Source: Paragordius varius (Eukaryota > Animalia > Nematomorpha). From it: a DNA stretch of 64,000 nucleotides. The DNA lies in NCBI GenBank assembly GCA_964247055.1, contig OZ176055.1, positions 8,680,001-8,744,000 of the forward strand. The letters are read 5' to 3'. The translations under genes and the position numbers were made by a program. Positions 8,201 through 64,000 of this stretch are shown here, piece after piece; the stretch's first letter is position 1, and each line of letters starts with the position of its first letter. Below the pieces are notes generated by a model that did not search any database, was not told the DNA's origin, and saw only the letters and a program-made list of their open reading frames with translations.

Positions 8201-11200
8201 TAGCTAGTTGTTGATAAAATATTTAAAACCATAATATATCATATATATATATATTATATATATATATATATATATATGTGATAAAAGCATAATATAAAAG
8301 AAAAAAAACCTAATTAATTAATTGTTATAAACGTAAAAATGTGGTCTTAACATCAAAAATTTAATTTTATTATATGTAAAAAAATCCTTTAAAATATTCA
8401 TTTATAACCATATCATTACCTGTAGGTAGGAGATTTAAAACAAGAGTGGGGTAAGCTAAATTGCTACATCCCGTGGGATTTCCACAAATCCTTGAGCAAT
8501 CTTCCGGCGAAGCACACGCGACAATATCTGAACAATCAAAAATGTCATTTATTATTTGTTTGTTATAAAACGCAATCAATTGCATTAAAAATAGAAAGGA
8601 AAAATTGAAATTATACGGACAAAACGTAATTTTTTTCAAAAGAGACAACCATACTTTTTTGAACCTTAATTTAACCTATATCAAAAACATTTAATAACAA
8701 GCATAAAATATGTAAACAATTTGTTACTAATATACATCTCTATTGTATACATTGGCGTTTAAAACAATGTGTTAAATTTAAAAAAATCATGATTTATATA
8801 TGGTTGTATTTTGGAGAAAAATATTTGTCTTTATATTTTTACCTTTTGTCCGTATAATTTCAAATTTTAATGTAAAAGGAATGACATAAAAAAGTAAGAC
8901 GCATTTTTTTGTAAAAAAACTAGACTATTCAACGTTAAAACTTATTCTTTATTAAATTTTGTGCGTATACGAAATATATATAATATAATGTATTATTTTT
9001 TAATTCCATTTTTTAATTGTAGCTCAAAACGATACGTAGGATAAAAAAATTAAGGTCGATTTAAAAAAAAGCATTGTTGTCTTAATTTTTATTTATATTT
9101 TTTAGATTTTTTTTCAGTCTAAAATAAACAGCGCCCATTAACTATATAATTATGCTAGGTATAAGGTGCTTTTTTCATTTAAATAATATATATTAGTTTA
9201 TTGTTGAATTAGATTCATTAAAATGACACTCAAATATACATACAAACTAATTAATTTGTGCTTAAAACACATGTATTTTATAAGGAGTTATATTAAATCC
9301 TTATAACCAAAGCTTCATTTAAATATGGAGAGAAATAGCTGAAATTTAGTAAAAAATTAGACGACATTATAAGTAAAAATACTCAACAATCCAATCATTT
9401 TAAAAGACCGCTTTCATATAAATTTTTAATTAAAAACCAATTATTATATAAAAAAACTGAAAATTATAATAAAATAAGAAAAAAATCTAGAAAATAAAAC
9501 CAGTAAAAAGGACTCGACTAATCATGCCTGGCAAGATTATCATGAAAAGCGGTAGCATTTTAAGGTAACCCGCAAATAGCGTTCCACCCTGAGCATGAGA
9601 TATATCTTTGGCAGCTAGTGCACGTTGAACCATCATCTAAATTAATTAAATAAAAGATTTTAAAAAAGAAAATATAAATTTTAGTTATTATCAAATTTAA
9701 AAGATGATATAGATTTTAATATGACAGTGATCTTTTAAAACCCTTAAAAATTTTATACAACCTGAATGTTAATTAAATTGAAATGTATAATTAAAGGTTG
9801 TTGTGACTAACTTAAATCTCGTTATGTAACACAAAACGATAGGTGGCGTAGAAAAAATCAAGCATCAAAAAATATTGTTTTATTAATAAAAAAACATATT
9901 AGTCTTGTAATTTTTATGTTTTGTCTTTAATTCAATGTCTTTAAAATCAATTTTTCCCAACTTATATTTACTTAATCAGCTCAATAATAAATACAAGCGA
10001 TCGTTTGTCCATAATAAATTAATATTTGATAGCGCTTTTTTATCAATAAAAAACCAATTTTTATTCAGCATAGTTTTAAAATTCTCTGGAAATCTAATCC
10101 AAAATATTTTTCAAGTTAATTTTTGAAAAACCAGATCAGCGCACTAATACTATTTGTCCAAAAATAAAATCAGGCCATTGTGGAAAAACGTGTCATTCAT
10201 GATTTAATATTTATACCAATGGCAATTAATAGAGAAAAATCTCTTAAAACCCAATTTTAACTTTTATCAAGTCAAAGTTTTTCAATATATTTTCGTAAAC
10301 CCCAAATTAAAAACCTAATCAGTGTACCTATAATAAATACTAGCGGTAATTTCCAATAAAAAATATTGCTTTTTTAAAACAATGGTCATTCATATCTTAA
10401 ATATGGGCCATGTGTTCCCCCTTCCCCACATTTATATCATTATGAAATATAATCCTTGTAAAACCATTAAAACGTAATAAAATCTTTCATAGCGCATAAG
10501 AAAATTCTATAGTAATCCATTCTTAAAATATTTTTGAACTTTAACTTTAAATAAAAAAATAACCTGATCGACGCACCCAGGCCAAGTTGTAAAAAGGGTC
10601 ATTCATAATTCAATATTTTATATGCAATGACAATTAAAAAATGTAATGTCCCTTACACATGCAAGTTTTTACTCAAAACTTTCTGAAATCCAATTTCCGA
10701 ATTCTCAAGGTACTCTCTGAAATCCTAAATTTAAAAGATAACCTGATCAGCGCACCAATACCATATACTAGCGGTCCTTTGTCCAAAAATGAAACCAGAC
10801 AGATGTGTAAAAAAAGGGTCATTCATAATCAATAATATGCAATGACAATTAAAACAAAATGTCCCTTTAACATGCAAATTTTTACTCAAAACTTTCTGAA
10901 ATCCAAGTTTTTACTCAAAATTCTCAAGGTATTCTTTGAAATCCCAAATAAAAAATAACCTGATCAGCGCACCAATACCAAATACTAGCGGTCGTTTGTC
11001 CAAAAATGAAACCAAACCAAATGAGTTAAGGGTCATACATAATTCATTATTTATTCAATGGCAATTAAAAATATGTCCCTTAAACATGCAAGTTTTTACT
11101 CAAAACTTTCTGAAATCCAAGTTTGTAATTCTCAAGGTATTCTTTAAAATCCTTAATTTAAAAGATAACCTGATCAGCGCACCAATAGCAAATAGTAGCG

Positions 11201-14200: not shown

Positions 14201-16273
14201 TGATAATGGATTTGTTAGGTTTCATTTAAAAAATATTTGCTAGGTTCCAACATATGTTTCGTAAAAAGCAAATAAAAGTTAAATATTAGTAATTTAATGT
14301 TTCCCACCTAGTAATAAGGTGTTCTTGAAATATTTATTAAAAACAAAAAAAGAGATAAATATTAAAATAGATGTTTAATAAACAAGTTAGTAAAAAAGAA
14401 AGCATTAAAATGCTAAAACGCTAATCAAGACGCAATATTACATTTTTTTACATAATATATAAATAATATATTATATTTGCATAAATTAAACATCATGAAT
14501 TATGAAATAGCCTATGGGTAAATGTCTGTATTAATTATAAGAGCAGCGTATGATAAAAAAACAACAAATGGTTGCAATTAAACAATTTTCCCTATATTTC
14601 AACAGCAATTTTATTATAAAATATGGACAGACTATTTTTCATACCATGCGTTACTGTAATTAAATGAAAAAAAACGTCGAAATTTATCTATATATACCGT
14701 ATACAGTCAAGATAATGCTTCCAATTAACATAATGATAGTTTGAAGAGTATCGGTATATATGACAGCAGCCAATCCACCTTTACAAAAAAAAATAAAAAA
14801 GAGCTAAAAATCAAATAATTCAAGTAATAAATAGCTTTTTTGTGCATAAATAGGGACTACATACACATTTTTTTTAAAAACTTAAATTTAATAATATAAC
14901 CATCTATCATTGGTTGGTATAAAAAAATTTTTGTAAAAAAAATTATCCCCAAAAATTTTTTGTACCGTTTGTAACACACAATTTTGTACAAAAAATAATC
15001 AGTTTAAAGTATTCGCATAATCAACTCATAAAAATAATTCAGCTTCCAAAAATATGTAATTATAATACGTTTTTCAAAAATAAAAAATCTTACCTGTAAC
15101 CGTGCATAAACACGTTAGAAAGAGAATAAATAGGATAGATGGATAGAGATTCCAATGCAAACTTTGTTGTATGAATAAAGCACCGGCATACAAATTAACC
15201 TTAAATAAAAGCGGTTAAAAATTAAAACAAATCATCTTTAATAAATTTATACAGTATAAATGTTAAAATTATCAAAACAAAATATAAAAAGTAACTGACA
15301 AACATTGGGTATATAAAGAAGGCAAGAGTTATTTTTTAATGTTTTTATTTTGTGTGAAGTATATGATATATGGGTTACAATTTAAAAATATAGAAAGGCA
15401 TGTGTTGCCATTTTGAATTTATTTCTTTCGTATTTCGCAACGCCAAACGATAGGTTATATTGTTTAAAAAATATGGTTAGTTCTTTACAAAAATGGATAT
15501 GTGTCAATTACTTTTTACATTTTGTTTATATGATTTTAATTTTTACTGTATTATTTTTAGTATCCACTGTGATATATAAAACACCAGCTAAATATAGATA
15601 GATAGATAGATAGGAGGCCAAAACCAGGAAAGTTAGGCATAAAAATATGGAAAAAGCATTAGAAAAAATACCGAGATTTTCGTAAAAATGTATAAAAGCA
15701 TAGATAAACACGCTAAATAGGTTCGAATGCGCCTCCCTCCAAAACGTCGATTCATATATTCTGGTAAGGTACATACCTTAAATATAAAAATAAAAATTAG
15801 TTTAAAAAATAAAAATAGGTAACTAAAAAAATGTATAAAACTTTAATAACTTACTCCGCTTGCTATAAATACAGGTAGGAAGACCCATCCTAACATTTGT
15901 ATCAAAATACAGGCCTAGAAAATGTTAAAAAATAATTATCTTACATTGATTTCAAATGCACCAACTGATAAACCAGTACTTGCACCTGATCCAGCTAACC
16001 CAATGAAATGTTCACTTCCAATATTGCTGGCAAAGAGGGAAGCCCCGACCTAAATAAATTATAATTAACAATAAAATAAATACCGGTAGCCATGTCATAA
16101 GCCTTCCAGCCAAAAAATATCCACTTATAGTGCCACGATTGGCTCTGAATAAGCTCTATAAATATTATTAATAAAATTATTCTTACATAAAATCCAACTC
16201 CCAGCACAAGAATAAAGTAAAGAACAACTATAGCGATATCGCCAGTTTTTAAAAGTGAAACTGTTTCATTCAT
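2222..16273 (-). CDS. SLC5A3: Sodium/myo-inositol cotransporter (SLC5/SSS family, SMIT1-like), 18 exons, ~802 aa
   Basis: Exons (minus, transcript order): 16187-16273, 16084-16155, 15945-16049, 15855-15914, 15672-15776, 15094-15199, 14698-14778, 12712-12916, 12128-12195, 11489-11697, 9501-9636, 8420-8527, 7760-7910, 6411-6579, 4705-4952, 4045-4134, 3284-3468, 2222-2445. All GT-AG, phases consistent, total 2409 nt. Motifs: [76 protein letters not shown]. The SEHFIG and WPGFxxGQTxASxWYWCADQ forms are closest to SMIT1 among SLC5 members I recall. Confidence 0.93.
2551..2803. mobile_element. MITE family C copy (TIR TACAGTAAAAAYTGAAATTATACGGACAAAACGT)
   Basis: Inverted termini tacagtaaat.. / ..atttttactgta. 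Related copies at ~8597-8873, 17823-18104, 29103-29382, 32293-32589. Confidence 0.7.
4320..4685. repeat. Tandem duplication, ~190-bp unit, 2 copies (SLC5 intron)
   Basis: tttttactatttcgtc..catccatttctaaa..ccccaaattt..acaccatatattttt occurs twice. Confidence 0.75.
5065..6000. repeat. Degenerate tandem array, ~150-200-bp unit, ~6 copies (SLC5 intron)
   Basis: gcatatcataatttgtg..ggactaaaaaattatgtg..aaattaaatcatatacac motif starts near 5071, 5219, 5418, 5581, 5773, 5964. Confidence 0.75.
7272..7723. mobile_element. MITE family A copy (termini TATACCATTTACAATTCAAATTCACCC, 21-bp subterminal repeats)
   Basis: Inverted termini tataccattt.. / ..aaatggtata with 21-bp units TTGAACAATTCAAATTCACCC. Other copies at ~19864-20045, 21201-21457, 21895-22162, 24784-25136, 26552-26840, 28185-28539, 33786-34122, 34455-34743, 36703-37057, 54112-54412. 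Confidence 0.85.
8597..8873. mobile_element. MITE family C copy
   Basis: aaaattgaaattatacggacaaaacg.. / ..cttttgtccgtataatttcaaatttt inverted termini. Confidence 0.7.
10120..11480 (-). repeat. Tandem array of 7 copies of the SLC5 exon-10 3' end plus 5' splice site
   Basis: aacctgatcagcgcaccaataccaaatactagcggtcgtttgtccaaaaatga (reverse complement of [17 protein letters not shown]|GTT) recurs near 10129, 10313, 10561, 10740, 10958, 11168, 11349. The functional copy is at 11486. Confidence 0.9.
13028..13557. mobile_element. MITE family B copy (termini TATACCATTTGCACTTCAA, 21-bp repeats TTGAACACTTCAAGTTGGTCC)
   Basis: Inverted termini; second copy at 39116-39726. Confidence 0.8.
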
Positions 16274-16354
16274 AATAATGTAATTTGAAGCGAGCAATGA
16301 GATTGCAATTTTTTTGTCACACTAGGAACACATTTTCAACATGTTTCAAAAATC
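16274..16354. promoter_or_regulatory. Putative bidirectional promoter/5' UTR region, SLC5A3-like / KRR1
   Basis: Only 81 bp separate the two divergent ATGs (16273 minus, 16355 plus). Confidence 0.6.
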
Positions 16355-44100: not shown

Positions 44101-47100
44101 TCCTGTTGAAACTAAGGACCCTGGTTCCGGTGTCATGTTGTTCTAATTCTGGTTCGAAACCCTGAAAATAACCCATATCGGTTTATTAAAAATTATAAGG
44201 TATGGTATTTTATAAGTGATCCTAGGGGATAATTTACATAAATATATTATAATCCATACCATTTAATTAATACTTGTTAATTTACGTGAAAATGTTACAT
44301 ATTCCAAAAACATTAGGGTACAGGTATATTCATAAGTTTTTAACGGTTTTTTATTAACTTATAATTTAAAGGGACATTTATTTATTATATTTAAAATAAT
44401 TTAAATCAGCTGCTACACATTTCGCTCATATCCCATGTAGTGCATAAAACCACAGAAAAGTAGATTGATTGTGGCAAACCGTTCGTCAAGCCATTTTCCA
44501 ACTTTTTCAAACTTATAAAAGGGTTGCCCTGCGAAGGTGCGCCCCATTGATGCAAAGTTGTATAAGTCAAATTACCGGTCAGGAGAATCCAGTGAATTCA
44601 GAAAAATCGCCATCGAAACGAATTTAAAGTCTCTTTCACTGGTTTTGTTGTGTGAGACGAAGCATTGTCTTGCAGAAAAATACTTGATCATGTTTTCTGG
44701 CTCATTCCAATTATTATAGATAAATGCATGGTTTTAAGGTATTTTAGCGATAATACTGTATATTGACAATTTGACGGGATTTCAAAGTTTTTAATACACC
44801 TACTGATCTGGTCCCACCTGACAAAGATCATGGTTTTCTTGCCGAAGCGATTTGACATTATTGTGGATATGAAAGCCAAGATTTTTTCGCTATGAATTTA
44901 CAAAATAATTTTTATCACCCTTCCCAATTCGATGCAAAAATAAGTTTTTTTCGTGACTTTGAAGCAAGATTTTACAAATTACTTTATTTTCGATTTGGCG
45001 CTCATTCAACTTATGTGGGACTGATTTAAAGAGTTAATTGGTATTCCCCAATGTTTGTAGACATCTGTTGGTTTTTGTGAATCTTGTAATGCTGCTGCCA
45101 ACCACCGTTAAGCTTCAGTTGGATAATCGTCTAATATGCCTTTGGTTGTCTTTGCAGTTGTGCGATTTATTAGAGCGCCCACGCTCTTTCACATGAAATC
45201 ATAACTTATTTCGAGACCATGTTTTTTATATGTTAATCGATAGAGCATGTTCATCATATGTGTCTGCCAGCAAACGATAACTTTCAACAGGCTATATCCT
45301 GATGGCAATACTTGAGGCAAATATATTTTTTGCCATAAAATTCGTCACAATTGCTGATTGATAAAAAGACGCTAGTTTTTGGTGAAGTCTACTTGTGTTT
45401 GTTGTCGTTTAATGTCAAAAGAACAAATGGTATGTATCAAATCATCGTCATTTCTTTTCAACGACATCTTCTCTTACTTAAGCCGGTAATAACTTTGACT
45501 ACACCTGGTATGAAAACTTTTTGGTATATAATATCGGAATAATTTATGGAATTAGAAAACAGTTACAATAAATAAATTTCATATAAATTTGAGTATTTAA
45601 AATTTTTTATAAAAATATATTTTTTTTACAATAATTTTAACTAAAATTAATTAAATTTGAGCCATTTTACAAAAAATTGAATCGGAACCATTTATTGACA
45701 AGCAAAAAGCAGGTGCCAGAGTTTCGTTTGGAGAGTTTCGGAAACGCTTTTATAGAACTGAGTTAAAAGGGGAAAACGACTTCAGACTGAAATTAACTGG
45801 TGAATAACATTATTAATAAACAGTCTAAATTTTTTATATATTTATACATATTCAGGTACAACATGGTTGTCAGAATTAATATCGCTTATTTTATCAAACT
45901 GTGAACCAGATAAAATTGCCAATACCGATGTGTCTGAGCGTGTAATGCGTTTAGAAGGATCACCCATAGATCGTCTAAATGAGAGAAATGGTGATTTTAA
46001 AATATTCCACAGCCACTTGCCTTACAATATGTTACCCGATAATTTTAGCAGAGCTAAAGTAATTAATTTACAAAATATGATCAACTACAAACATTTATTC
46101 CAAAAGAAAAGCTGTAAATTTTTTACATTGTATGTCCTCTTTTTAAAATTATTTAGATTATTTATTTGGTACGTAATCCAAAGGATGTGGCTGTGTCCTA
46201 TTACCATCACCACAGAATGGCAAAACATTTGGGCAATTTTGATAAATCATTTACGGAATTTCTTAGCCTATTTATGGAGGAAAAGGGTGAGAATATGATA
46301 GCTTATTTTCTAATAATTAATAATTAGGATAATTGCTTAAATGATCCAGCATGTGAAAAAATAAACAGTAGATACTTAGGAAAATATTTAATTGAGGATT
46401 TTAAGGAGAAGTTTTTTAAAAAGTGTCTACGAATCCAAAAATGAATTCATTATAGATCAGCATATACCATAAAATGCTAAAATTATAAAAACTACAATAT
46501 TTTAATTAATCATGATCTTCTTTTAAATATTTCGTTAACAAAATTAATATAGTATGATTGTTTCATAATAAAGTTAAGTGAATTATTTAGATTTTGATAT
46601 AACTACAATATATTTTAGTTCATTGGGTATACATTAATTTATTTCTCGTAACTTGTATTTTTTAGTTTGTATGGGATCCTGGTTTGACCACGTGCAATCG
46701 TATTGGAACCACAAAACCAATATTAATTCATTATTCCTGCGTTTCGAAGATATGAAAAAAGTAAATATTTGAGGATTGATAATGAACATCAAATGGAGGC
46801 GTTAGATTGCAGAAAACATACCAATTGATTTGTATTGGCCATCATAACTGTTTCTCATTTAATATAGTTAACATATTTTTTAAAATTTAATCAATCTGTT
46901 AGCATTAAAAACAATAATCAATTAAAATATAAATGAAAAAAGGGATGAGTTTTTTTAGGTTTCAAATTTTTAAGTAAACTTGGAAATGGCTTTGAGAAGC
47001 AACATTAATAATATACCTCTTTACTAAGATAAAATCGTGGTTACAAAAATCATATCGTTTGATATTAAATCATTAGTAGCTATTCTCTCAGTGGCTGGTT

Positions 47101-49196: not shown

Positions 49197-52100
49197 ATGG
49201 TTATAATCAGGGGATATATGATCATTGTATTCTTAATTGTGCTTTTATTAATTACACCTTCTAATGGCATCCGGATATATCCCTTTCTTGAAAATGAAAT
49301 TTTCAATCGCGAAATGTTTGCAGAGGAAATGCCGTTATGGAGAAAAAATGGTCATTACGAAATCAAGCGTTCACGGGGATTAGACGAATTGCCGATGAAT
49401 GATAATATTCAGTCTGTACCTGGAGCTAAATGCTTATCGATTCCAATGAATAAATTGGATTATTATATGGCTACCCTTTGGCTATTTTGGATTGGTAACA
49501 GTGATCCCGGTGACCATGTATTTTTCTTACCGGATGAAATGAAGTTTGTCAAAAATCCCGATTACAATCCATACATGGTACAGCAACTCGAAAAATTCAA
49601 GTCGGGTGAAAGTAATTGGCATAAAATACTGAATATACATAACCTTTTTAATCATCAGCAGCCAAGATCTCAAAAAGATCGTATTCGACGGTCTCTTCGA
49701 TCGCCATCATTGGATCCTTCGGAGCAGAATCTAATGGAAACGGTTTATGCCCTTTTATCTGACCTGAAGACAAAAAATGTTAAATACCGCAAAAATTCAA
49801 TGATCATTCAAAATCGAACGACCCCTTATGAAAGGTTTGAGCTTTTTTAACTATATAAATATATCATATTAAGGGTTTTCAATGGTGTTGCTTAAACATT
49901 TGGTGCCCGCTCACTGGCAGAGGGTTTTTGTGGAAAAAATAAGTAAAAGGATTAAACAAACTGGTAAAAGAGTTATTGGAATTAGTTTTGATTATGACCA
50001 ATTAATAAAACATTAATTTTTATATTAGACCACGGTTTTCAGGTTTAAATGAGCATTAGGGGTTTAAAATAGTGGCTCATGTCGGTATGTACAATAATTT
50101 AATTATATTTTGGTTAAAGTAGAAATTCATAGCAACTTTATTATATAAATTCTGTAAATATCAGGTGTAGTCATAGATTATAATGTTTATGGTAAAAAAA
50201 CATGTAATTTTGAAAGGAAACAATTATTTATTTTATTCAAAATATTTTATATCACTTCTACACATTTTGCCCATCTCTCTGGTAATAATGGAATTGACTG
50301 CCAAAAACCATTTATCATGTCTTTTTTCAGCGCCTCCAAAATTATGGATGCGCTGCTCTATGAGGGCTAGCCTCATTTGAGTGAATCATTAGTCAGATGG
50401 CGCTGGGGAGGAATGTTAAGCGGGTGCAAAAAAATTCCCATCGAAGTGTTTTTAAATAGCCTTTCACTGGTTTTGGGGTGTGAGACGGATCATTCTCATG
50501 CAGCAAATATTTTGCTATATCTTCTGGCCAATTCCGTTGTTTTCCCATTATAATTGGTTTAATCGGGGATAGTTTTGTGTATTCACTGTTTCACTGGGTT
50601 TCAAACGTTAATAATACATTATTCCTTAGCCTCACCAGACACAGAGCACAGTCTTCTTGCCAAAGCTTGGCAGGTGAAAGCCACGAATTTTTAAATTTGG
50701 ATATATAAAATAAAGCCATCTCTTATAACCCGTCCCAATTCGAAAGAATGATACTTATCCTGACGACATTCATTCAAATTGTGTTGGAGACATTTACCAA
50801 GTTTATTGGTCTTTTTCCTCGTATGCTATTGATTGTTTTTTGTGATGTAATAATTCTGATATTTTTTTTAAGTTTGAGTCGGGTCATCATCCAATAACTC
50901 TTGCCCTTTGGCGTCTTTGCAGTGTGTAATCTACCAGAGCGCTCACGCACTTTCACGTGAAATTATAACTTTAAATATTTTGAGACCATATATCATATAT
51001 GAGCGAAAGAAAACTTTCACCATATGTTTCTGCCAGCAAACGATAACTTTCAACAGTCTTTTTTATGGCAATGGTTGCAGCAAATTTTCCTTTTTAGCCA
51101 CAAATTCCGACATGATTGAGTGATAAAAAATTATAACGTTACTTGTGGTCAACTCAACTTGTAGGTGTTTGTCGGTTAATATCAGATTAACAAAATGGGA
51201 TATGTATCAAATTAATCTACCTTAAAATTCAATCAAAATCTCCGTTCACCTTCTAAATCTTTTTTTGAAGGAAATATGTATATTTAAGCGATATTTGGTT
51301 TCAAACAATAAAATTATAAGATGTAGAAAGAGCGGTTCCAACTATGTAATATATCATAGTTCGAGCAAGAATTAATAGTATTAAATTCGCTTTTGCAGTT
51401 TGCTGAATTTTAATATAATTTCAATGTGTTGAGAGCTTACATATAAACATTTGTAGGGCACAATATCGGCTTTTTTGCGTTGATATTAAGCCCACTGCAT
51501 ACACGGGTTTCAAAAATATTTAACTTTTGGAGTATAAAATTTATAACAGGCAATATTTTCCTTTTAGATATAATTTTAACATACTAGCAAAATAATTTGG
51601 TTTCAGGCATTTTGATTTAGTTAAAAATAATATTTAGCATGAAGTGGGCTAAGTTTGCGATTCAGAGCAACAAACACGATAAGTGTAGAAATATCTTCCC
51701 CAAATGATTCGTATTAAAATCATTACTATAAGAATCCTGATATTCTTTACCATATTCAAAACAACGACTTATATTCATTATAAAATAATAATAATTTAGC
51801 AATGCATATTTAAAAATATAATACCACAGATCAGTTTTTAATTTAAATTTCTAATTCGGTGTGTTATAGTACTAACCTTACTTATTTTATACGACGCCAA
51901 AACATTTTAAATTTAAATATTTTAGGAAATACCATGGGTCATTTTAAAAATATACGCTATGGTATTTTAGACACATTATCAAAAATTTTGATGTATTGTA
52001 AAAAAATATCCGGCATTTTTTCTAAATTTTTCATAGTTCATTACTAAAAAACTGGCAACTCAAATTTCACTGATAAAAATATATACAATTAACTAAATAA

Positions 52101-54844
52101 ATTAGCAGTAAATTTTGATATTAAAAATAAGCAGCCTTTGTTTAAATAGGTTGGGGCACTGAATTTGAGATTGTGCTATTTCAAAATCTGTAAAAAATAA
52201 AGCTGTTTGCTTTGTTAATTGATTGATTTCCAAAAAATCAATGTCAAATGGGAACTTAGCACATTCGACTCTATTAAGCTTTAACTGCTAGAGAAACTTT
52301 ATAATTATTAATTTTGTCGGACCCTTTATTTTTATTAACATTCTCCGTATGTTTGAACGCATTAATAACAACCTCTTCTGCAGTTAGTACGTCCGTCCAT
52401 ACAAACTGCGGAAATCGGGGAAAAAATAGCCATATGAAATATATATTCTGAGAAATGTATTAGGATTATCATGATCCTTCTGGTTTTAGTCATGACGAGT
52501 GATATAAGAAAGTTATTTATGCTAAGTGCTCCATATCAGAAAATGGCAAAATTTGCGCACATTATTTTAAATAACTTTTGCTTCATTCCAAAAAATATCA
52601 CTAAAATATATCATTAAATAAAAGAAAAACAATGTTTTCAAAAAATTGTGATTTTTAGATATGGGCTTTGAAAGTCCAAAATTTTTTTGCCCTTTCTAAA
52701 ATGAGCTAGTTCTCTTAAAATAAACGCAAATATGAAAATCCTAAATGTTAAATTTTGATATTAACTAAAACTGTTTTTTTTAAAAAAATGCATACTTTTT
52801 TTACAAAATTTAAATTTTTTGTTGAAGCGTAGTTCATATTTTGAGGCATGATGGAAACGGTTTATAAAGCTGTAAGATGCCATAAAAATACTTTTTGTAT
52901 ATAATTCGATGCATTTCTGTCACGTCAGAAATTGATCAAAATATTCGTTCAAAATTTTGAAGCAAACAAACTTTTAAATAAAAATTCTGAAGCGGAAATG
53001 TTCATCATCGAATTATATAGAAAAATATTTTTACAAAATCTTAAAGTGTTCAGTATGCTTTTTTCAAAAATATTTTTAGTTGATATCGACATTTAGCATA
53101 TACTATAATTTTAATGGCGCAATGCCGGCATATTTGCTTTTATTTTTAGAAAACTAGCCCACTTTAGGAGAAGTAATTTTGGACTTTGGGACACATCTAA
53201 AATTAAAATATTATAAAAATCTTGTTTTGCTTTTTATAGGTAGTTTATAATATATATTAGTGATAATTTTTGGAATAATGCATTTAGCTTCTACAAAAAA
53301 AATTATTTAAAAAAATATGCACAAATAGAGCACATACCAAAAAAGTGTATATAACTTTCTTATAACACTCGTAAGGTCCAAAAGCACCATGATAATCCTA
53401 TCAGAATATATAAATATATATATTTCATCAGATTATATTTCTGTTGACACTGTGTATATTGGATCCATAAATGAGACTTGTTATAATCGAACTGTTGATT
53501 AACCATAATTTCGTTTTTGTCTGAGTAAGAAATCAATGTTTGATAATAATTATGATTTAACCAAAAATTTAGCATAACTTGATGTGTTTACAATTTTTGA
53601 TATTTAGCAAAATGCACGTATCTAAGCGCTCATTTTGTCCTTGGATTTATGTTAACAATACGGACCATAACCGATGGCCCAAGCGTTTTATTGAAGTTGA
53701 ATGTATGCATAAAGCTGGCTCTGAATGCGGGACCAGTTATAGCGAAAGTGATAACACTAATGCTGAAAATGGGGTGTCGAGACCGCTTGCATTGAGCAAA
53801 AGTGAATGCCAGCCCGTATATTATGAAGCTAAAGTACTTTATGTACAGGTATATATTTTCTATTTTTGAAATCATAAATGGTTGATCTATTTTCATATAC
53901 TTTTTAATAAATTAATCGGGTAAGTATATCTCTATCTCAATATTTTGTACACATTACAAATTTTTATTGTTAGATATCCCTGTTTTAAATTTTTAATTAT
54001 GTTGAGATGTCTGGTTTTGTGTATTCTTCTCTTCTGACGACTCTCACCGAACACATATATTAGTTGATTTTAATCCATAAGTGATCCACTTATTAAATAA
54101 TTTTTATCATATATACCATTTACAGTTCAAATTCACCTATGAACAATTCAAATTTACCCTAAAATAAATTATGTATTTTTTAGATTAAAAACTACCTTTA
54201 TTTTATAAAATTTTTAAGATATGAAATTCTGTTTAAAATTAATTTAATGCTGAAATAACAATAAGATATGTCGTAAATATATATTTCATATTGATGAGTT
54301 ATATTATCCCGAAAACACATAGTTTATTTTTAGGGTGAATTTGTTCAGGGGTGAATTAAAACGAGGGTCAATTTGAATTGTTCAAGGGTAAATTTGAATT
54401 GTAAATGGTATATTAATAAAAAACCGGGTAACATAATCAAATTGAAAAAATGAAAGTCTCGCTAACTCCAACTATTTTTGAAATAACATGATTTGATCTG
54501 TCAAACACAACTTTCTTAATATACTTGTTCTATGTCAATATATTTAGCCGTGTGAACCCGCCGTACCTAAACTGTTAGATCATCGTTATGTTAGTGTTAA
54601 AGGCGATATGATATCCCTGAAAATGGCATGCGTTTGTACGTCAAAACGTACGCCTCTAACGCGTGATGAAGTATACATCAAGGACAAGGTTATTGATTGG
54701 AAAAAGGGTTTGCCAGGTACTGACCGGTTATTTTCTAAACGTGCAAAAAATGAAATTTATCCTCGATTTGGTTTGGCTGCTCCATCCCGACACATATATA
54801 ATGATTATGCTGATATGTCTATGCGAAATGGAGATGGGAACTAG
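49197..54844 (+). CDS. Secreted IL-17-like cystine-knot protein precursor with long pro-region, 3 exons, ~391 aa
   Basis: Exons 49197-49834 (phase 2; alternative ATG 49218), 53608-53848 (phase 0), 54548-54844; total 1176 nt. Signal peptide MIIVFLIVLLLITPSNG. Domain KRSFCPWIYVNNTDHNRWPKRFIEVEC..C..CQPVYY..VL..C..ACVC matches the invertebrate IL-17 pattern RSxCPW..DxNRxP..C..CxPxxY..CxC. Joining exon 1 to exon 2 rests on phase compatibility and the signal peptide. Confidence 0.72.
50161..51240 (-). mobile_element. Second degenerate mariner copy (IL-17-like intron 1)
   Basis: PSFGKKTVLCVW, SSPAPSD, LPERWAKCVESDIKYFE* with stops and frameshifts. TA-TCAGGTGTAGTCA terminus at 50159; the other terminus was not located. 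Confidence 0.85.
52520..53360. repeat. Copy of the non-coding repeat family seen at 41700-43750
   Basis: gttgaagcgtag..catgatggaa, gaaatgttcatcatcg..tcttaaagtgtt, ggacacatctaaaattaaaa, tagtttataatata..tagtga segments are shared. Confidence 0.55.
54112..54412. mobile_element. MITE family A copy (IL-17-like intron 2)
   Basis: tataccatttacagttcaaattcacc.. / ..gaattgtaaatggtata. Confidence 0.85.
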
Positions 54845-56514
54845 GAAAAATAATGAATATTTACTCTGAATTTTAAAACAATATGACTACATATATTTTT
54901 TGTTGTTTTTTAATTATATTTTAAATGTAACCATATAATTAATAAATTGTGATCATCGTATGATCAATAATTTTATTATTTTTATGATCCGTATATTTAT
55001 AGTAATGAGTATATTTTCGAATTTTGATTTCGTAAAATTAGACAAGTTGCAGTAACTTTAAACAGAAATGCGCAAAGCTAGTTAGCAAATATGATATTTT
55101 AAATATGAATTAAATGCCTATATGGTTTATAATATACGTGACACAAGCACTTAGTCCAAAAATTATAAGTGTTGGTTAAAATCTGACATTTTAGTCGAAA
55201 AACTTCAATTAACATTTGTAAGTAAATTTATTTTAAAATTTTGGGCATCGAAATTCGTTTAACCTAGTTTTTATTATTATAAAATTTGAAATATTGCATG
55301 CATAAATATTATAATATTGTATATTTATACTTCAAGACCTTTTTAAGGTAGTTGTATGCCTCCAGGCCATAATTTAAATATTAAAATATTTTTAGCATTG
55401 GGCCTATTTAATAATATGCTTGCTTTTGGCTTTTAGGCGCATGATACAATAAAACGCATTTTGGAAATAATTCTCGTCTCAAACTTGTTCGCCGCCATTT
55501 TTTTCTTATTTTCTCGCTAATACAACTGGTAAAAAGTATAATGTTATAAAATATAAATAACTAACTAAAAGCTTTATAAGCATGATATGATTTGCGACAT
55601 TTTTTAGGTTATCTATTGGGGTTTCTAGAACTTAAAAAACTGTATAAATTCTAAGTTTTATTAAAATGCAGGAGAGGGTTGAGTAATTATATATTATCCA
55701 ATACATTAAAAACTGTAGTTTGTTTTTTTTCAAGCATATCATCACATAAAATATACTCGTTAACATCTTTCGATTTATTTTAAGAAAAACTGGCTCATCT
55801 TAGAGGTAAAAATGAGAAAGTTTTACAGTTTTGCTTTTTTGTTTATGATATTTTTATTATGTTTATTGGATTGAAGAATTCAACTTCAAATAATTTTAGC
55901 CACAATCGGGGCTGATTTTGGATTTTTTGGTATGCTTCGTTTAAAATAAGATATTTCTTAAATGACTGCTGACCATAAGAATGCAAAACAAATTTCTAGC
56001 CTTACATATATATATATTGGTGGTTTGTTGCATAAAACGTAATATATCCATTGTTGTATATAAATGGGCTCATAAGTTTGCCAACATTAAATAAGCCTTT
56101 AGTGAACTAATGCTAAAAATATATAATCTAATAATAACATATTTATAATAACAAATAAAATGGGCTCTCCGAAAATCATGACGTGTTTGTTCAGGTGAGC
56201 AATGTAACATTTTCATTGAATTTTAATATTTTAAATTGGAAATTAATTTATGTTTAATCAATAAAAAATATTTTTTCTTGAATTATATTAGATCGCATCT
56301 GCGTCAACATACAAGGTCACATGTATCTCATTAATATTTAATTATATAAAGATCCATATATATATATATATATATATATAAACAGCTATTTTCAATTAAA
56401 TATGCATGGCCCCAAAATTGCTAAATTTAGTTTTTGAGGGCGTTTATAAGGTTTATATTGATATATCAAACATTTCCGACTATTTTTATTTTTTTAAAAA
56501 ATATTTTCAGCAAA

Positions 56515-59500
56515 ATGAGAATTCCTGTCTTATTACTTTTATTTATGGTTATGATTGCGGATGCTTGCTACATTACAAATTGCCCAGGAAAGCGCAAGAG
56601 GGCATTTGATTCCGCATTTACTATCCATAAAAGATTCCTTTACAATCAAATTCACGAAGTATATTTTCCTATTTTTTTTAATAGCTCTTGAAACAGAGCT
56701 CGTTATTTACTCTTTTGAAACTTTATCTTGATTTATACCACACTAGCTTGCCATATACGTATGATAAAAATTATTGTTCATAGACTAAAGTCAAGGATAA
56801 GAGGGAGACTGTTTTAGTGGACCTAGAACCATAAGCTTATCTTAAAACCGTTTTGAACCTTTTACTTTTGATGATGTTTCTTATATCAGAATTTCTATTC
56901 GGAAGTAGCTTCGTTAATTTTGTTTTTTTTTAGTCAAAGCATATATTTTAGAATTTAATTTTAACTGACTGGTTTGACTGCATTTATTAGCATCCAAACC
57001 GGATACTATGTTTTGGGAGTCTTCATTCTATACATATATGTAACATAATACGCCCTAGCACAATCAATATTTTTAACCTGATAATCATTTATAAATAAAT
57101 GAAATAACTTTTTGCCTAGTAAACCCTTACCTTGCCCAATTATAATTGGTTTAATATAGTTGTAAAAATTTTAAAGGCATACTCATTCGTTTAATTTTTT
57201 TGAAAGGGAAGGGTAGAATTAGCATTCCATTACGCCCACGCAAAGAATTAAAATATGGTAATTATTTTATGATTGTCTAATACAATGTTTCTGGAACAAA
57301 TTTTCACTTTTTCAACCTTTAAAATAGTGGCTAATACACTGTTTACCGGGATAATATATTAAATTATTTAATGATACGCTTATTTTTAATGCTGAAGAAA
57401 TGTTGTTAAAACTTTTAAAAATGATGGAAATGTCTATTGGTTATTAGTAAACTATGAGTTTAAACAGCAGTAATAAAATTTTATATTACAAATTGTTATA
57501 ATTTGACTGGCATATTCAGAAATATAAATTTGTATTTAATATCGTATTTTGCTCTCAGGAGATTTCAAATGTTGCATCAGATCTATGTTCTTAAATAAAT
57601 ATGTAATAGGATTGGAACTGATTGGTTAATCGTTCATATGGGCATTCGTAACCGTGACTGCGCTCGGGATAAACAAATAATATTACATATACCAAATCTT
57701 TTTAGTAATTTATATGTAGAGTATTGGCAGAGGCAATATCCTGGAAAATGTGTGGGCCTATTTAAATTATAAAAGGGAATAATTTTGTGTTTTTTGGATT
57801 AGCTTTTTTGCCTCACCCATGTGATGGGGCTAAGGATCAAATATTGGCCTAGATGCATAAGATCCATTCGAATTTAACGATTGAGTTTTCTGATATTTTA
57901 ATGAAACTGGTCGAGTCATTTTTTAAAGTTGTCCCTCAGTTTATCCCGGCCTTCCCCCTGAATGTGTTTTGGAACAATGGGTTTTTAAGCAATTAAGAAA
58001 TTGTGTAGGCCCATTCGAATTCAAAAATGTAACATAAATTTTTATAAATACGCCAAGAATAAGTCATTTATCTACCCGTCGTTTAGCCCGACCTTCCATT
58101 TGAAAATAAGGGTTTATCTACAATCTGCATTTTCCCATAAACCTGTACGCCCTATCAAATTTAATAGTAAAATTTTTTTATTTTTTAAATGCACCGAGGG
58201 TGGTAGAGCCATTTTACGTATTAGCCACTCATACCCACCTCGTCCTACTTAATAAAGGAGTTTTTATAATAAGTGAAGGCTTTTAACTTATTTTCAGAAA
58301 ACGTGTAGGCCCATTTAAATACAAAAGCAAAATTTTATTCCATTATGGATGTTTAGTTCATTTTCATCCTCCTTATAATTTCCTTAAATCAAGTTTTTTG
58401 ATAAAAAATTAAATCATCCCAAAATTCAAAAGTAAATTTGGAAATTTATAAGGACATATGAAGAGGTTAATGGCCCTATATATTTATGAACTAAAAGATT
58501 ATTGCTGATTTTGCAATTAGGCGCAAAGTAGGGATTCACCCTCTGTAAATTTACATCGAATTAAAAATTGTGCGAAACACATTTCTAGGTTTCGTATAGC
58601 CTCATTATCGTATTTTATTGCAGGGAGGTCAAATCCCTTGTTATAGCCCTAAAATGTCCCAACTTTTATCTAAATACTATAATATAAATAAAGTTTTACC
58701 ACTTTGGGAAATAAAATATTTATAAATTGACAATAAGTGTCTTCTTACAGAGTTTTAATATGAGCATATTTGTATGATGCAATAATATTAGTGAATGTGA
58801 AACCCCGTAAAGATATGGTAAGTATTTTTAGTGATATTTTAATAATTTTTATCTCCGCTCATGGTATCGCAAATTTTATTAGGCCAATTCACTAATTATT
58901 TTTAAGATCAAAATCATGCGACACGCGATAAAAATATTAAAAAATGGTAACTTAAAATTACTTTTATGTACTATATTAAATTTTTAATTTATCGTATATT
59001 AAACTGTGTGTAAAAAAAATTTTAATTGTAAAAAAAATTTTAACAAAAAAATTTTTTTTTCATGAGATAGCTTATGACCAACGTATTCATTTGCCGCAAA
59101 ATTTTTTATTTATTGACAACCTAGTTTTTGAAATATTAAGAGAAAATCGCAATCGGGCAAAAAGTGAAAATTAAGGATAATTCAAAAGAATGATAAAATC
59201 TGAAATATTATCGTTTATTATCATTTAAGGAGATATTTTCAATATATAAATAGCCTAAAATCATATAGTTAGCGTTTCTATAAAATTTCAGGTCAAAAGA
59301 TGGCGTTTTTCTTTTTTCACACTTAAAAGACTAAAAAAATTTAATAAAACTATATTAAAATAATTTTTTTTAATTATTTACTACCTAAACTCACTATTAA
59401 AATTTTAATATTCATATTTTATTCAGGAAAACTTCTATATCAAAATAAAACCAAAAATATTGTTTTTTATTTTTGCATTTTTTTGTGGTTTATGAGTGTA

Positions 59501-62213
59501 TTAAAAATTTATACTGTTTTATTTTGGATTCTTACATGAGTGGGAATTATTAAGTATATAATTTTTGCTAAATAGGATTTAATATTAGTGAAATATCAAC
59601 CAACAATCCGTACAAATCCAAATACAAATATTAATTTGTTATAAAACAGACTTAAAGGAAATTGTAAGGATTGTTGGTTGATATTCAACTACTTTTAAAT
59701 CCTATTTTGCATAAATTATAAACTTAATAATTCCTAATCATTTAAGTTCCAAAATAAAACAGTATAAAATTTTTATACACTCATAAACCAGATGATAAAA
59801 AATGCAAAAATAAAAAACAGTATTTTTGGTTTTATTTTGATTTTGAAGTTAATTTTCCTGAATAAAATATGAATGTTAAGTATTTAATAGTGAGTTTAGG
59901 TAGTAAATAATTAAAAAAAAATATTTTAATATAGTTTCATTTAATTTTTTAGCCTTTTAAGTGTGATAAAAGAAAAACGCCATCTTTTGACCTGAAATTT
60001 TATAGAAACCCTAACTATATGATTTTAGGCTATTTATATATTGAAAATATCTCCTAAAATGATAATAAATGATAATATATCAAATATCATTATTTTTTGA
60101 ATTATCCTTAAATATCCTTAATTTTCACTTTTTGCCCGATTTCGATTTTCTCTCAATATTTCAAAAAAGGTTGTCAACAAATGAAAATTTTTGCGGAAAA
60201 TGAATGATCATAAGCTATCTCATGAAAAAAAAAATTTTTTGTTAAATCAAAATGACCCTCTTTTTTGCGCACAGTGTTATGTGCTTTCAAGCGGAAAATC
60301 TAATAGGCTATTTTTCATTTTATATAACATATATTAGCATTTGTGTGTTGACTAATTATCGTTAATGACTACATTTATACGCGGTCAGGTACACTATTTT
60401 TTGATTGCAAACTTATTACATATAATAACCAATTCAATCATTTATTATTATCAAGTAAGCATTTTAAATAATTGAAAATTTCCCTTAAAAATTTATTTTT
60501 TATGACACTCTATAGTAAATTATTTTCCTATTCCAAATTTTTTAATGCATCGATTCGCAACATTAAACAAAAACTCTATATTCTCCACATTTTAGTTGTT
60601 TGAATCTTTATTTAGTTTTGATATTCACAGCACCTTTTATTCGTTGCATTCATTTCGCTCATATGCCGTTGAAAATCTTGATTTATATTGAAAAATGCAT
60701 CGTTGCATATTTCATTGGATTAAACGCCATCTAACCTTTGTTTCATTGTTTCCTCTTTGTCAAACCCTCTTTCTAATAAGTCAGAAATTTATTTGAAAAT
60801 CCACCGGGAAAACTATAATTTTTTAACATAAAACAGATAACTTAAACAGTAAATAATCCTGATTAATGAAGTATGACCGATTCGTTAGATATTTATGAAA
60901 ATTTTTGATTTAAACTAGGACAGAAAAGTAATTTTCGATTTTGCCTGATAGAATTGCTTTAAAGGTACGCTAATCAAAAATAAGTGAATTTCCTTAAGAT
61001 TACGCATACAATCAGGATCAATTTTCAAAATATAAACCAAAGTTAAATCTTCTCGGAGGAATAGAATGTAAACGTGAAATAGAAAATTGTATAAACCATA
61101 TAAATATTAAACTATGAGGACAAAAATAATTTAGATTTTATTTTTTACATCCAGTGTCCTTCGTGTCAAATCGACGGGAGTGAAGGAAAATGCTTCGGCC
61201 CCAATATTTGCTGTAATGATACTAATGGTTGCCATATTTTACCAATGGGACAATCAAATCCATGTGCTATCGAAACATCGCTAGATGAACCATGCCAACC
61301 CGTTGGAAAGGAATGTGCTGGAAGCCTAGGTGGCTGTATAGCTGGTCTTTGTTGTACTCCAGGTGCGATTTTTAATTACTATTTTTTGTTTTTATAAGTT
61401 CTAATAAGTTATGGACTGTTTTATTTAACTTCTTCTAAAGATTTTTTATAAAGTATTTATATCGGGACCATTCTGTGGTTCTTCATTCTCAAAATAAAGT
61501 TTTAAGGAGATTTATTTCTCACTCTATGTACTTTTAAATTTTTGTGAAAAGATACATCAGCCAACGACGGCATTTTGAAGCAGTTTGTAAGCTTCTATGA
61601 ATTGACTTTTTTTTAAACACAATGTAAAATGATATTTTTATAATTTTTAAACATTATTATTGAATTAATATTATCAGATAATAAAAATTTTCAATGACCA
61701 AGTTTTGTTTGAAAAGCTATATACCATTCACTATCATTTATTAATAATCCTTAATCATCGCAAACGCCTTTCAAAATGCTTGAAGGTAGTTTATTTTGAC
61801 TGCGTGACACAGTTTTACATAAAGATACTATCAAAATGATTTAACTTTTAATTTTCTTAGTGATTTTTTAAATAGTTTTGCATAAATATTTATATTTTGA
61901 TGACCGAAGTTCAAATGAGACTCTCTGGAATATTAATTTGTCATTCTAAATGTTGAGCCATGTGATTGGTTCGCCATTGATTTTTATCAAAATAAATAAG
62001 CCCAAAATGGATTAGACATTTATACTTTTTTGTTCCCTTTCAATATTTGTCCTTTTTATAATGATAAAAATAATAGTTGACATATGTCTGTCAATTTTCT
62101 TAAGACTGCGTGCGTGGTGACAAAAAGTCTACCAAAGTTTGACAGTATCCAAATAGCTTATTTAAACATTTTTAGATGGGTGCTTGCGAGATATATCATG
62201 CATACAAGAATAA
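56515..62213 (+). CDS. OXT/AVP-like: Oxytocin/vasopressin-family neuropeptide-neurophysin precursor, 3 exons, ~129 aa
   Basis: Exon 1 56515-56658: signal MRIPVLLLLFMVMIADA + CYITNCPGKRKRAFDSAFTIHKRFLYNQIHE. Exon 2 61155-61362: CPSCQIDGSEGKCFGPNICCNDTNGC..CAIETSLDEPCQPVGKEC..CIAGLCCTP (neurophysin core). Exon 3 62176-62213: DGCLRDISCIQE*. 390 nt total. Intron phases 0 and 1 fall at the positions known from vertebrate OXT/AVP genes. Confidence 0.93.
59003..60275. mobile_element. ~1.27-kb foldback / long palindromic non-autonomous element in neuropeptide intron 1
   Basis: Arms ~59003-59612 and ~59665-60275 are reverse complements throughout (catgagatagcttatga/tcataagctatctcatg, ggtcaaaagatggcgttttt/aaaacgccatcttttgacc, atatcaaccaacaatcc/ggattgttggttgatat). 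No ORF. Confidence 0.85.
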
Positions 62214-62557
62214 TGACATGGTCCAGACGCTAGCGATTTTTTTAAATTTCAAATCATTTATTTAAAACATATAAAAAATTTAGAATCAATTGTATATCAC
62301 ATGTGTTAATGATGTTTACATATCAATAAACTAATCTATAATTGCAATATATAATAGTATTAATTAATATACATATAAATATGGGGGTGATTAGCAAAAT
62401 TGCTGCTTATAAAATGCCGTTTTTAAGGTTTTAAACCCGATTCAGCTTTATACTTTTTTTGTCTCTCTTCATGCAACAATCTATAATAGAGCAAGAGGAA
62501 AAGGGCATTTCTTCCAATTTTAACACGTAACTTTATTGATGAGAGCTAATTCATTTA

Positions 62558-64000
62558 TTATCTACAACCACATCCTACCGCAACCATGTCTTGATAATTT
62601 TTAAGGACAACTTTTTCATATTCATCCAAATATAGCATAGAGATGGGACTCAACTCTGTAGCTACGCAACATACCGTAGGAGCTAAATTACGGTTAACCG
62701 AATTGACGAGCGTTTGAATTATGGCATGATTAGTGGAATTGAGGTGGTCAGATAGGGGAAACGGGCAATCCCCTCCACAGAAAAAAGCATGGTACCCAGG
62801 AGGGGCTACAATCCAGTCGTTCCATCCCACATCGCTGAAATCAACGTAAAGCGGGTGTCTCCTACAATTGGCTGGGCCATATTTTCGTCTGTGCTTACGC
62901 ATAGTAGCAAATTCAGAACCTTCGAATGTTTTTATATTGCGTTTACTACGAGCATGTGTGTTGTGCCCTAGCTTATCATCATTATCGCTATTGGCTTGAG
63001 TATTAGGATCATGATGGAAAGTAAGTAAGAAGGGATCCTCAGACGTGTATATAACCGCGTGGCTGTTTGAAACTGTTTGATTTTGTGAAGTTAGCGAGTC
63101 ATGAGAATGATTAGATTGATAAAATTTTGAGTGATGTACATCAAAACATTTTACATGGGATGGAACAATGTCCAAAATGAAGCCTTTATTGTGATCTGGA
63201 TGCAAGGACCAATCCTCGATAGATTGAGTTACATCAAAAGATTCCCAAGCAAACGCATTGGTTAAATGCATGAGTTTAGAATCGACCAATTTGACATCTA
63301 TAAATTTTTTGGGTAGCAAGGGTTTGTTATTCAAGGTATTGTTTATGAATGTTTGAGCTTTTGGCCAATTTTCACGGCTTAACACTTGATAAAGGTCTAG
63401 GCGATAACTCATGAGCTGACTATCATTGAAACAAAACGGTGGTACAAATGTATTTTTGTGCCAAAACAAATTGTATAGATAAAATCGTATCTCAGCCGCC
63501 ACAAGGTTGGGTGGTAGCGTAGAGGTATTGTAATGTATGTAACGGCTGTAGGAGGAAAATTCGTTTTGCACTAGTTCTTTTGGATCAAACTCTACATCTA
63601 AACAGTTAAAGAAAATTTTACTATAAAATATTTTGGTTTTAGAATTCTACAATAATTTTAAAAGGTCGTTTTAAAATTAAATAATTTTAATGCCTTATAT
63701 TAAAACCAAAAAAAATATTCATAGAAGTAAACAGATATTTACCAGTTTCGTAAATGGTGTAAGCTTGGTTCGCACCATTTTCCGACAATTTATGTAATCG
63801 ATTTGGCATGGGAAGATTGTATATATTATCATATTGCTCAGATTGAATTAAATATTGAATCATGGGCGATAGGGTTGTTTGATTCTGTTCGCTGTTATCG
63901 AGTAGCAATTCTTCCATTTTCGCTGACTGAGCAATGGCTAAATTGTATTTGGCCAGCTGAATTCGATATAATCGAACAAGGTATTCGGGAATACGGATAT
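62558..64000 (-). CDS. BMP2/4: BMP2/4 (decapentaplegic) TGF-beta family ligand, 5'-truncated by the window edge
   Basis: Exons 63743->64000 ([10 protein letters not shown] prodomain motif) and 62558-63597, separated by a phase-1 intron 63598-63742. Furin site RSKR. Mature domain [89 protein letters not shown]. Confidence 0.97.

Follow-up and report, generated by a model that had tools for sequence, protein, structure and literature searches.

An intact vasopressin/oxytocin-type precursor gene with a seven-residue hormone segment, CYITNCP

The window analysed here is a 64-kb stretch of genomic DNA with a G+C content of ~25%. It contains a complete three-exon gene on the + strand, and all coordinates below are window positions on that strand. 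Exon 1 (56515–56658) encodes the signal peptide, the hormone segment and the N-terminal arm of neurophysin. Exon 2 (61155–61362) encodes the neurophysin core, and exon 3 (62176–62213) ends in the stop codon at 62211–62213. Intron 1 (56659–61154) is 4496 nt long and in phase 0, while intron 2 (61363–62175) is 813 nt long and in phase 1. Both have GT..AG ends, and the exon and intron boundaries were checked by script. A candidate polyadenylation signal, AATAAA (62325–62330, a motif match only), lies 112 nt past the stop codon. Intron 1 carries a high-copy palindromic repeat at ~58960–60340. A BMP2/4-type ligand gene is placed tail-to-tail with the hormone gene, 344 nt apart, and the other neighbours are an ORF with an IL-17 domain and partial sequences of a sodium:solute symporter and a sulfotransferase. 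All these neighbours are bilaterian genes. The AT-rich genome is best read as that of a bilaterian, probably an ecdysozoan.

The stop-free translation of 56515–56658 reads MRIPVLLLLFMVMIADA-CYITNCP-G-KR-KR-AFDSAFTIH-KR-FLYNQIHE, and a GT donor is next at 56659. The first 17 codons (56515–56565) encode the signal peptide MRIPVLLLLFMVMIADA, which is hydrophobic in its core, with small residues in positions -3 and -1. Its cleavage is placed after A-D-A, just ahead of hormone Cys1, by the -3/-1 rule rather than by a predictor. An earlier reading of this locus from the letters alone (the sequence-only reading) had called the signal peptide intact, and this 17-residue leader agrees with that. Right behind it, the codons at 56566–56601 are exactly as that reading had quoted them, and their translation confirms CYITNCP-G-KR-KR. 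The hormone segment CYITNCP (56566–56586), recognized by translation and pattern search, consists of a six-residue Cys1–Cys6 ring plus Pro7. One Gly codon follows at 56587–56589 and presumably provides the amide; canonical precursors have x8-G9-G at this place. The tetrabasic processing site K-R-K-R occupies 56590–56601, so that an amidation and processing signal, G-K-R-K-R, is present at 56587–56601. An extra spacer, AFDSAFTIH, then leads to a further K-R site (56602–56634), and the neurophysin N-terminal arm FLYNQIHE (56635–56658) ends the exon. The distance from Pro7 to the first neurophysin Cys is 24 residues, compared with 15 in the related precursor on contig L001 and 17 in rotifer precursors. 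Cleavage at the extra K-R would free a nonapeptide, AFDSAFTIH, with a computed [M+H]+ of 1008.479.

The hormone segment has most of the features expected of the family. The hormone follows the signal peptide at once, and the Cys1–Cys6 ring, Asn5 and Pro7 are present. The absent feature is positions 8 and 9, that is, the variable residue and the Gly of the nonapeptide Gly-amide; Pro7 passes through one Gly into KRKR. The segment is two residues shorter, in frame, than the C-x4-C-P-x-G-GKR norm, as the sequence-only reading had proposed. Pfam Hormone_4 aligns with only profile positions 1–7 of 9 and scores 14.8 bits, under the cut-off of 17.1. A degenerate CYITNCP pattern has a single match in the window, and with GKR added it gives 0 matches in 100 shuffles. 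A pattern search of the 64-kb window found no second hormone-coding segment. A micro-intron or an alternative donor that would restore a nonapeptide is excluded. There is no GT within 56549–56658, and the plain reading of the hormone therefore stands; the only GT-AG pairs inside exon 1 would remove the hormone itself.

The neurophysin part of the gene is well preserved. Exon 2 comprises 69 codons and one further nucleotide, encodes 12 Cys and is assigned by Pfam, PDB matches and alignment A1. It matches Pfam PF00184 (neurophysin) with 37.4 bits (E=4.6e-9, cut-off 27.2) and the solved bovine neurophysins in the PDB with E=1.8e-7 to 2.8e-6; these searches were run exon by exon. Exon 3 completes an Asp codon and continues as GCLRDISCIQE-stop. 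It supplies the last two neurophysin Cys and is without a copeptin-like tail. The neurophysin cysteines of exons 2 and 3 (12 + 2) make up the full family set of 14, and with PF00184 above threshold they uphold the claim that the neurophysin cysteines are intact. Alignment A1 shows no variation in any Cys column or at the pocket Glu. The window gene retains the CFGP motif, together with the Glu and Leu of the hormone pocket, in both the HMMER alignment and alignment A1; this Glu and Leu line the pocket of bovine neurophysin, where neurophysin–hormone crystal structures have established their roles. All 16 cysteines of the precursor, its frame and its splice sites are intact. Intron 1 (phase 0) interrupts the gene directly ahead of the first neurophysin Cys; intron 2 (phase 1) follows two codons and one base past the second Cys-Cys pair. 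Both positions and both phases recur in the canonical precursor on L001, and the intron positions can indeed be called intact, as had been claimed. The three-exon layout with these intron positions also agrees with vertebrate genes. Together, the observations place the gene, intact, in the oxytocin/vasopressin family of neurophysin-associated genes. It is real and, judged from its sequence, very probably functional.

An exhaustive HMMER search with exon 2 gives five hits, three of which are true relatives. The other two were rejected, P0001 as a bacterial SpaA-type repeat protein and P0005 as spurious. The nearest true relatives are a neurophysin of Priapulus caudatus (P0003, assembly GCA_000485595) and a priapulid-like one on L001, a 2.4-kb Logan contig. 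Both are 47–48% identical to the window core in the HMMER search and 44–45% in alignment A1, and they are 58% identical to each other. Over any relative found, the identity of the neurophysin core is 42–48%. L001 encodes a signal peptide, CFIINCPPG, GKR and ten residues, and then has an intron before the first neurophysin Cys. A G-C-H-I/L motif is common to the window gene and the priapulid-type precursors. Although L001 has the same intron positions and phases as the window gene, it carries a canonical nonapeptide and GKR. The annotated Priapulus product, unlike the window gene, is without the hormone exon, and a pattern search of the Priapulus locus (L002) found no hormone-coding segment. 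A word-indexed protein search with exons 1 and 2 gave no candidate, its reach with exon 2 (69 aa) being at most ~121 aa and full precursors having ~130 aa. The synteny route through the adjoining BMP gene gave best matches of 39–52% identity from many phyla and no locus of a close relative. With a priapulid neurophysin as its nearest match and with ancestral introns, the gene looks vertically inherited.

The short hormone could be produced artificially if six bases had been lost in sequencing or assembly. Four runs were compared with the window as Logan contigs, not as raw reads, and both this and the ends of contigs near the site in runs X1 and X4 give such an error some room. However, the 6-nt assembly deletion that the sequence-only reading had itself raised is not seen. 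Run X3, which comes from another study and has another organism label, provides a 201-nt contig on 56548–56748 that spans the entire hormone and processing site with 0 differences and 0 gaps. Among the differences listed for the four runs, there is no insertion or deletion at 56566–56601. The local sequence is not repetitive, being neither a homopolymer nor a microsatellite. The reading frame and the downstream processing site are preserved, and the ungapped alternative (G-K-R-K-R for x-G-G-K-R) requires no deletion at all. We regard an error of this kind as highly improbable.

The same comparison reveals a second haplotype, found in X1 and X4 at single-copy depth. Its contigs end within the first hormone codons, at 56574 in X1 and at 56567 in X4, and these ends may mark a polymorphism there. 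Among the runs listed, no RNA-labelled one contains this stretch. Five exon differences are among those listed for the 352 nt of exons 1 and 2, corresponding to ~1.4%. Those at 56518 (A>C, signal peptide) and at 61196 and 61223 (exon 2) are silent. Those at 56533 (T>G, Leu to Val, signal peptide) and 61251 (Gln to Glu, exon 2) are conservative. None of the five falls on the hormone, the Gly, the basic sites or any cysteine. In contrast, allelic contigs of intron 1 differ from the window by 51 substitutions and 13 gap letters in 388 nt, by 39 and 16 in 365 nt, and by 55 and 69 in 805 nt, which amounts to 7–13% divergence plus indels. The difference between ~1.4% in the exons and 7–13% in intron 1 argues for purifying selection and against a decaying copy. 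The exons look selectively constrained.

This constraint also bears on whether the gene is the main one of its kind. It might instead be a divergent extra copy, newly specialised or decaying, that accompanies a canonical nonapeptide gene at another place in the genome, and in that case the short hormone would say little about the main vasopressin/oxytocin (VP/OT) signalling of the animal. Such duplications occur: Adineta and Rotaria have two precursors each (bioRxiv 10.1101/2024.07.20.604414 supplement), and duplicated precursors are found in several arthropods (PMC5153645). The sequence examined here is one 64-kb window, and a neurophysin only 42–48% identical to the relatives found would suit a divergent copy as well. 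The intact frame, splice sites, 16 cysteines and pocket residues speak against it, as do the low and mostly silent variation of the exons next to that of intron 1 and the lack of a second hormone-coding segment within the window. We consider an extra copy unlikely, but worth keeping in mind.

The nine-residue Gly-amide format has been held in this family for ~600 million years. In a survey of arthropods, the 121 complete tabulated peptides are all 9 or 10 residues long and include x8 and, as a rule, Gly9 (PMC5153645). An invertebrate review gives peptides of 9–11 residues, with tunicates reaching 13–14 (PMC7181382). The shortest family peptide that we found is the 8-residue venom conopressin ba1d, CFLGNCLN (PMC8066144). 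It too has fewer than nine residues, but it carries Leu7 for Pro7, is one residue longer than CYITNCP and is a component of venom rather than the product of an endogenous hormone gene whose neurophysin is shown to be intact. In the searchable literature, members have 8–14 residues, and we found there no 7-residue member and no short-form CYITNCP. The same literature shows no link between Nematomorpha and vasopressin-type peptides and no hairworm member. As predicted from the gene, CYITNCP would be shorter than any family member known so far.

The sequence CYITNCP itself is familiar as part of longer peptides. It is found in CYITNCPPG of the centipede Strigamia maritima (PMC5153645, PMC7181382) and in the conopressin CYITNCPRG of Conus bayani (PMC8066144). 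CYITNCPWG first turned up in a fly transcriptome, where it was taken for a rotifer contaminant (PMC5153645); later it was listed from Brachionus, together with CYITNCPIG from Adineta and Rotaria (bioRxiv 10.1101/2024.07.20.604414 supplement). Because of these rotifer peptides, a rotifer origin of the window was weighed, but it is not favoured, as the searches gave no close match among Brachionus proteins. All of these CYITNCP-containing peptides of other animals have x8-G9 and a single GKR. The arthropod inotocins and other VP/OT-type peptides, such as CLITNCPRG-amide and CFITNCPPG-amide, have the I-T-N-C-P core in common with the window peptide, and the first seven residues of the Strigamia peptide, CYITNCPPG-amide, are identical to it. 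Their precursors also have the same order as the window gene, namely signal peptide, hormone, basic site and neurophysin. However, the arthropod peptides keep x8 and usually Gly9, whereas in the window gene Pro7 passes straight to the amidation Gly. In the rotifer precursors (CYITNCPIG-GKR in Adineta and Rotaria, CYITNCPWG-GKR in Brachionus) the CYITNCP part is identical to that of the window gene, and both have 14 Cys and place a His two residues ahead of the first neurophysin Cys. The rotifer precursors, however, keep positions 8–9 and have a single GKR, while the window linker exceeds theirs by seven residues and contains one additional KR. The nematode nematocin (CFLNSCPYRRY-amide) is likewise an ecdysozoan departure from nine residues in a neurophysin-associated precursor (PMC7181382). 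It has 11 residues and a diverged ring, while the window gene combines a conservative ring of the arthropod and rotifer type with a shortened tail.

How the short form arose can be read in more than one way. The sequence-only reading described the gene as two codons short. The hormone is indeed shorter by two residues, but a deletion as the origin does not follow, since substitutions fit equally well. In an ungapped alignment, x-G-G-K-R of the norm corresponds to G-K-R-K-R in the window gene. Point changes, a loss of six bases, or such a loss combined with a duplicated KR are possible routes that fit the sequence equally well.

From the textbook route of processing, the best prediction for the mature product is CYITNCP-amide. 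The signal peptide would first be removed and a Cys1–Cys6 disulfide would close the ring. Neurophysin would then bind hormone residues 1–3, through the free amino group, Tyr2 and Ile3, for packaging into secretory granules. Neurophysin recognizes only the free amino group and residues 1–3 of the hormone, and these residues (C-Y-I) are unchanged in the window hormone. A prohormone convertase would cut at KRKR, and a carboxypeptidase (carboxypeptidase E) would trim the basic residues. In the next step, an amidating enzyme would use the single Gly to give CYITNCP-amide; Pro-amide ends are made by the same route in TRH and calcitonin. The computed monoisotopic mass of the disulfide-bridged CYITNCP-amide is 809.320, with [M+H]+ at 810.327. 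In the animal itself, the finished peptide would act as the endogenous ligand of a VP/OT-type G-protein-coupled receptor, and this receptor would need to be activated by the ring and Pro-amide alone. A functional VP/OT-type precursor gene, whose short hormone is processed to CYITNCP-amide and serves as a receptor ligand, is the reading that we think probable, with some reserve.

The gene may also be expressed with a different product, either the Gly-extended free acid CYITNCPG (computed [M+H]+ 868.333), should amidation after Pro be inefficient, or a peptide from other cleavages among the three basic sites. The predicted mature form comes from general processing rules only, and the linker is odd, with its tetrabasic site and an extra KR nine residues on. 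Against a different product, all family members listed here carry the standard amidation signal of Gly plus a dibasic site, and Pro-Gly is amidated in the precursors of TRH and calcitonin. A carboxypeptidase removes successive basic residues, so that a cut at either KR of the tetrabasic site would lead to the same Gly-ended intermediate. A Gly-extended conopressin, CYITNCPRGG, does occur beside the amide in Conus bayani venom (PMC8066144), and we give a divergent product of this sort a small but real chance.

If CYITNCP-amide is the product, the question moves to the receptor. In the structure of the human oxytocin receptor, the ring lies deep in the pocket and residues 7–9 point toward the extracellular loops (PMC9293896). 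With the ring buried and residues 7–9 facing the loops, a ligand of ring plus Pro could still dock, and its action at a VP/OT-type receptor is structurally conceivable. On a conventional receptor, a peptide without positions 8–9 would be expected to be a poor agonist; the amidated C-terminus matters for activating the human receptor. CYITNCP-amide could thus either need a tail-independent receptor or act as a weak agonist or blocker. The short hormone would suggest that the extracellular contacts of its receptor have changed. An intact, constrained gene for the ring and proline only would be a natural experiment on the need for positions 8–9, and CYITNCP-amide would give a minimal natural scaffold for ligand design.

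Some consequences depend on the animal being a horsehair worm. In that case, the gene would be the first VP/OT-type gene described for the phylum within the searchable literature. Nematodes are the sister phylum of horsehair worms, and with the shortened peptide beside the 11-residue nematode one, the evolvable part of the hormone in this clade would prove to be its tail rather than its ring. A horsehair worm might also release the peptide into its insect host, where it would be a partial agonist or blocker at the host inotocin receptor. Such a release could play a part in the changes of water-related and locomotor behaviour that infected hosts show, but we consider it very doubtful. The host ligand, CLITNCPRG-amide or similar, has the I-T-N-C-P core in common with the window peptide.

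The linker of the oxytocin/vasopressin-type hormone precursor carries an extra nonapeptide flanked by dibasic sites, AFDSAFTIH-KR (window 56602–56634), whereas canonical precursors have no such nonapeptide. As judged from the sequence, processing may set AFDSAFTIH free as a peptide in its own right, with an [M+H]+ of 1008.479. The second-haplotype contigs of sequencing runs X4 and X1 stop at 56567–56574, within the first hormone codons. These contig ends may reflect a polymorphism, or only a branch in the graph. Upstream of the start codon of the hormone gene, a TATAAG motif lies at 56445–56450 (65–70 nt away) and an (AT)n microsatellite at 56358–56380 (about 135 nt away). A T>A polymorphism at 56444 directly adjoins the TATAAG motif.

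Within intron 1 of the hormone gene, some 1.3 kb of sequence (58960–60340) forms an almost perfect palindrome, the inverted arms of which are nested and show 83–95% complementarity. Its depth in the contigs of X1 and X4 is about a thousand times the single-copy level, and it is present too in runs X3 and X6, which bear two other organism labels. The palindrome has the look of a foldback or MITE-like element present in very many copies.

The 2.4-kb Logan contig L001, from SRR31406938, encodes an unannotated canonical invertebrate precursor with CFIINCPPG-GKR (1878–2370). The neurophysin it encodes shares 58% identity with the Priapulus one, so the source of this contig is probably another scalidophoran. 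At the Priapulus caudatus locus L002 (KQ715817.1, 79279–113629), the annotated neurophysin product has 114 residues, begins with MRCGPGG and lacks both signal peptide and hormone. A pattern search of the fetched 34 kb also found no hormone-coding segment; the public gene model is therefore probably truncated.

The hormone gene has a BMP2/4-type TGF-β ligand gene as its tail-to-tail neighbor (62558–63571, minus strand), with 344 nt between the two stop codons. The ligand gene matches the Pfam TGF_beta and propeptide domains, and its top database relatives are just 39–52% identical. An upstream exon of this gene is probable near 63687–63917. An IL-17-like gene had been proposed at 49197–54844 in the sequence-only reading, and a Pfam IL17 domain match (E = 5.7e-6, above the cut-off) in a plus-strand ORF at 53579–53866 agrees with it. 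Sub-threshold Pfam matches suggest a candidate sulfotransferase exon at 45867–46298 (plus strand) and a candidate sodium:solute symporter exon at 8370–8648 (minus strand). The segment at 15995–16297 (minus strand), with no match in the Pfam search, is similar by eye only, suggesting a further candidate symporter exon.
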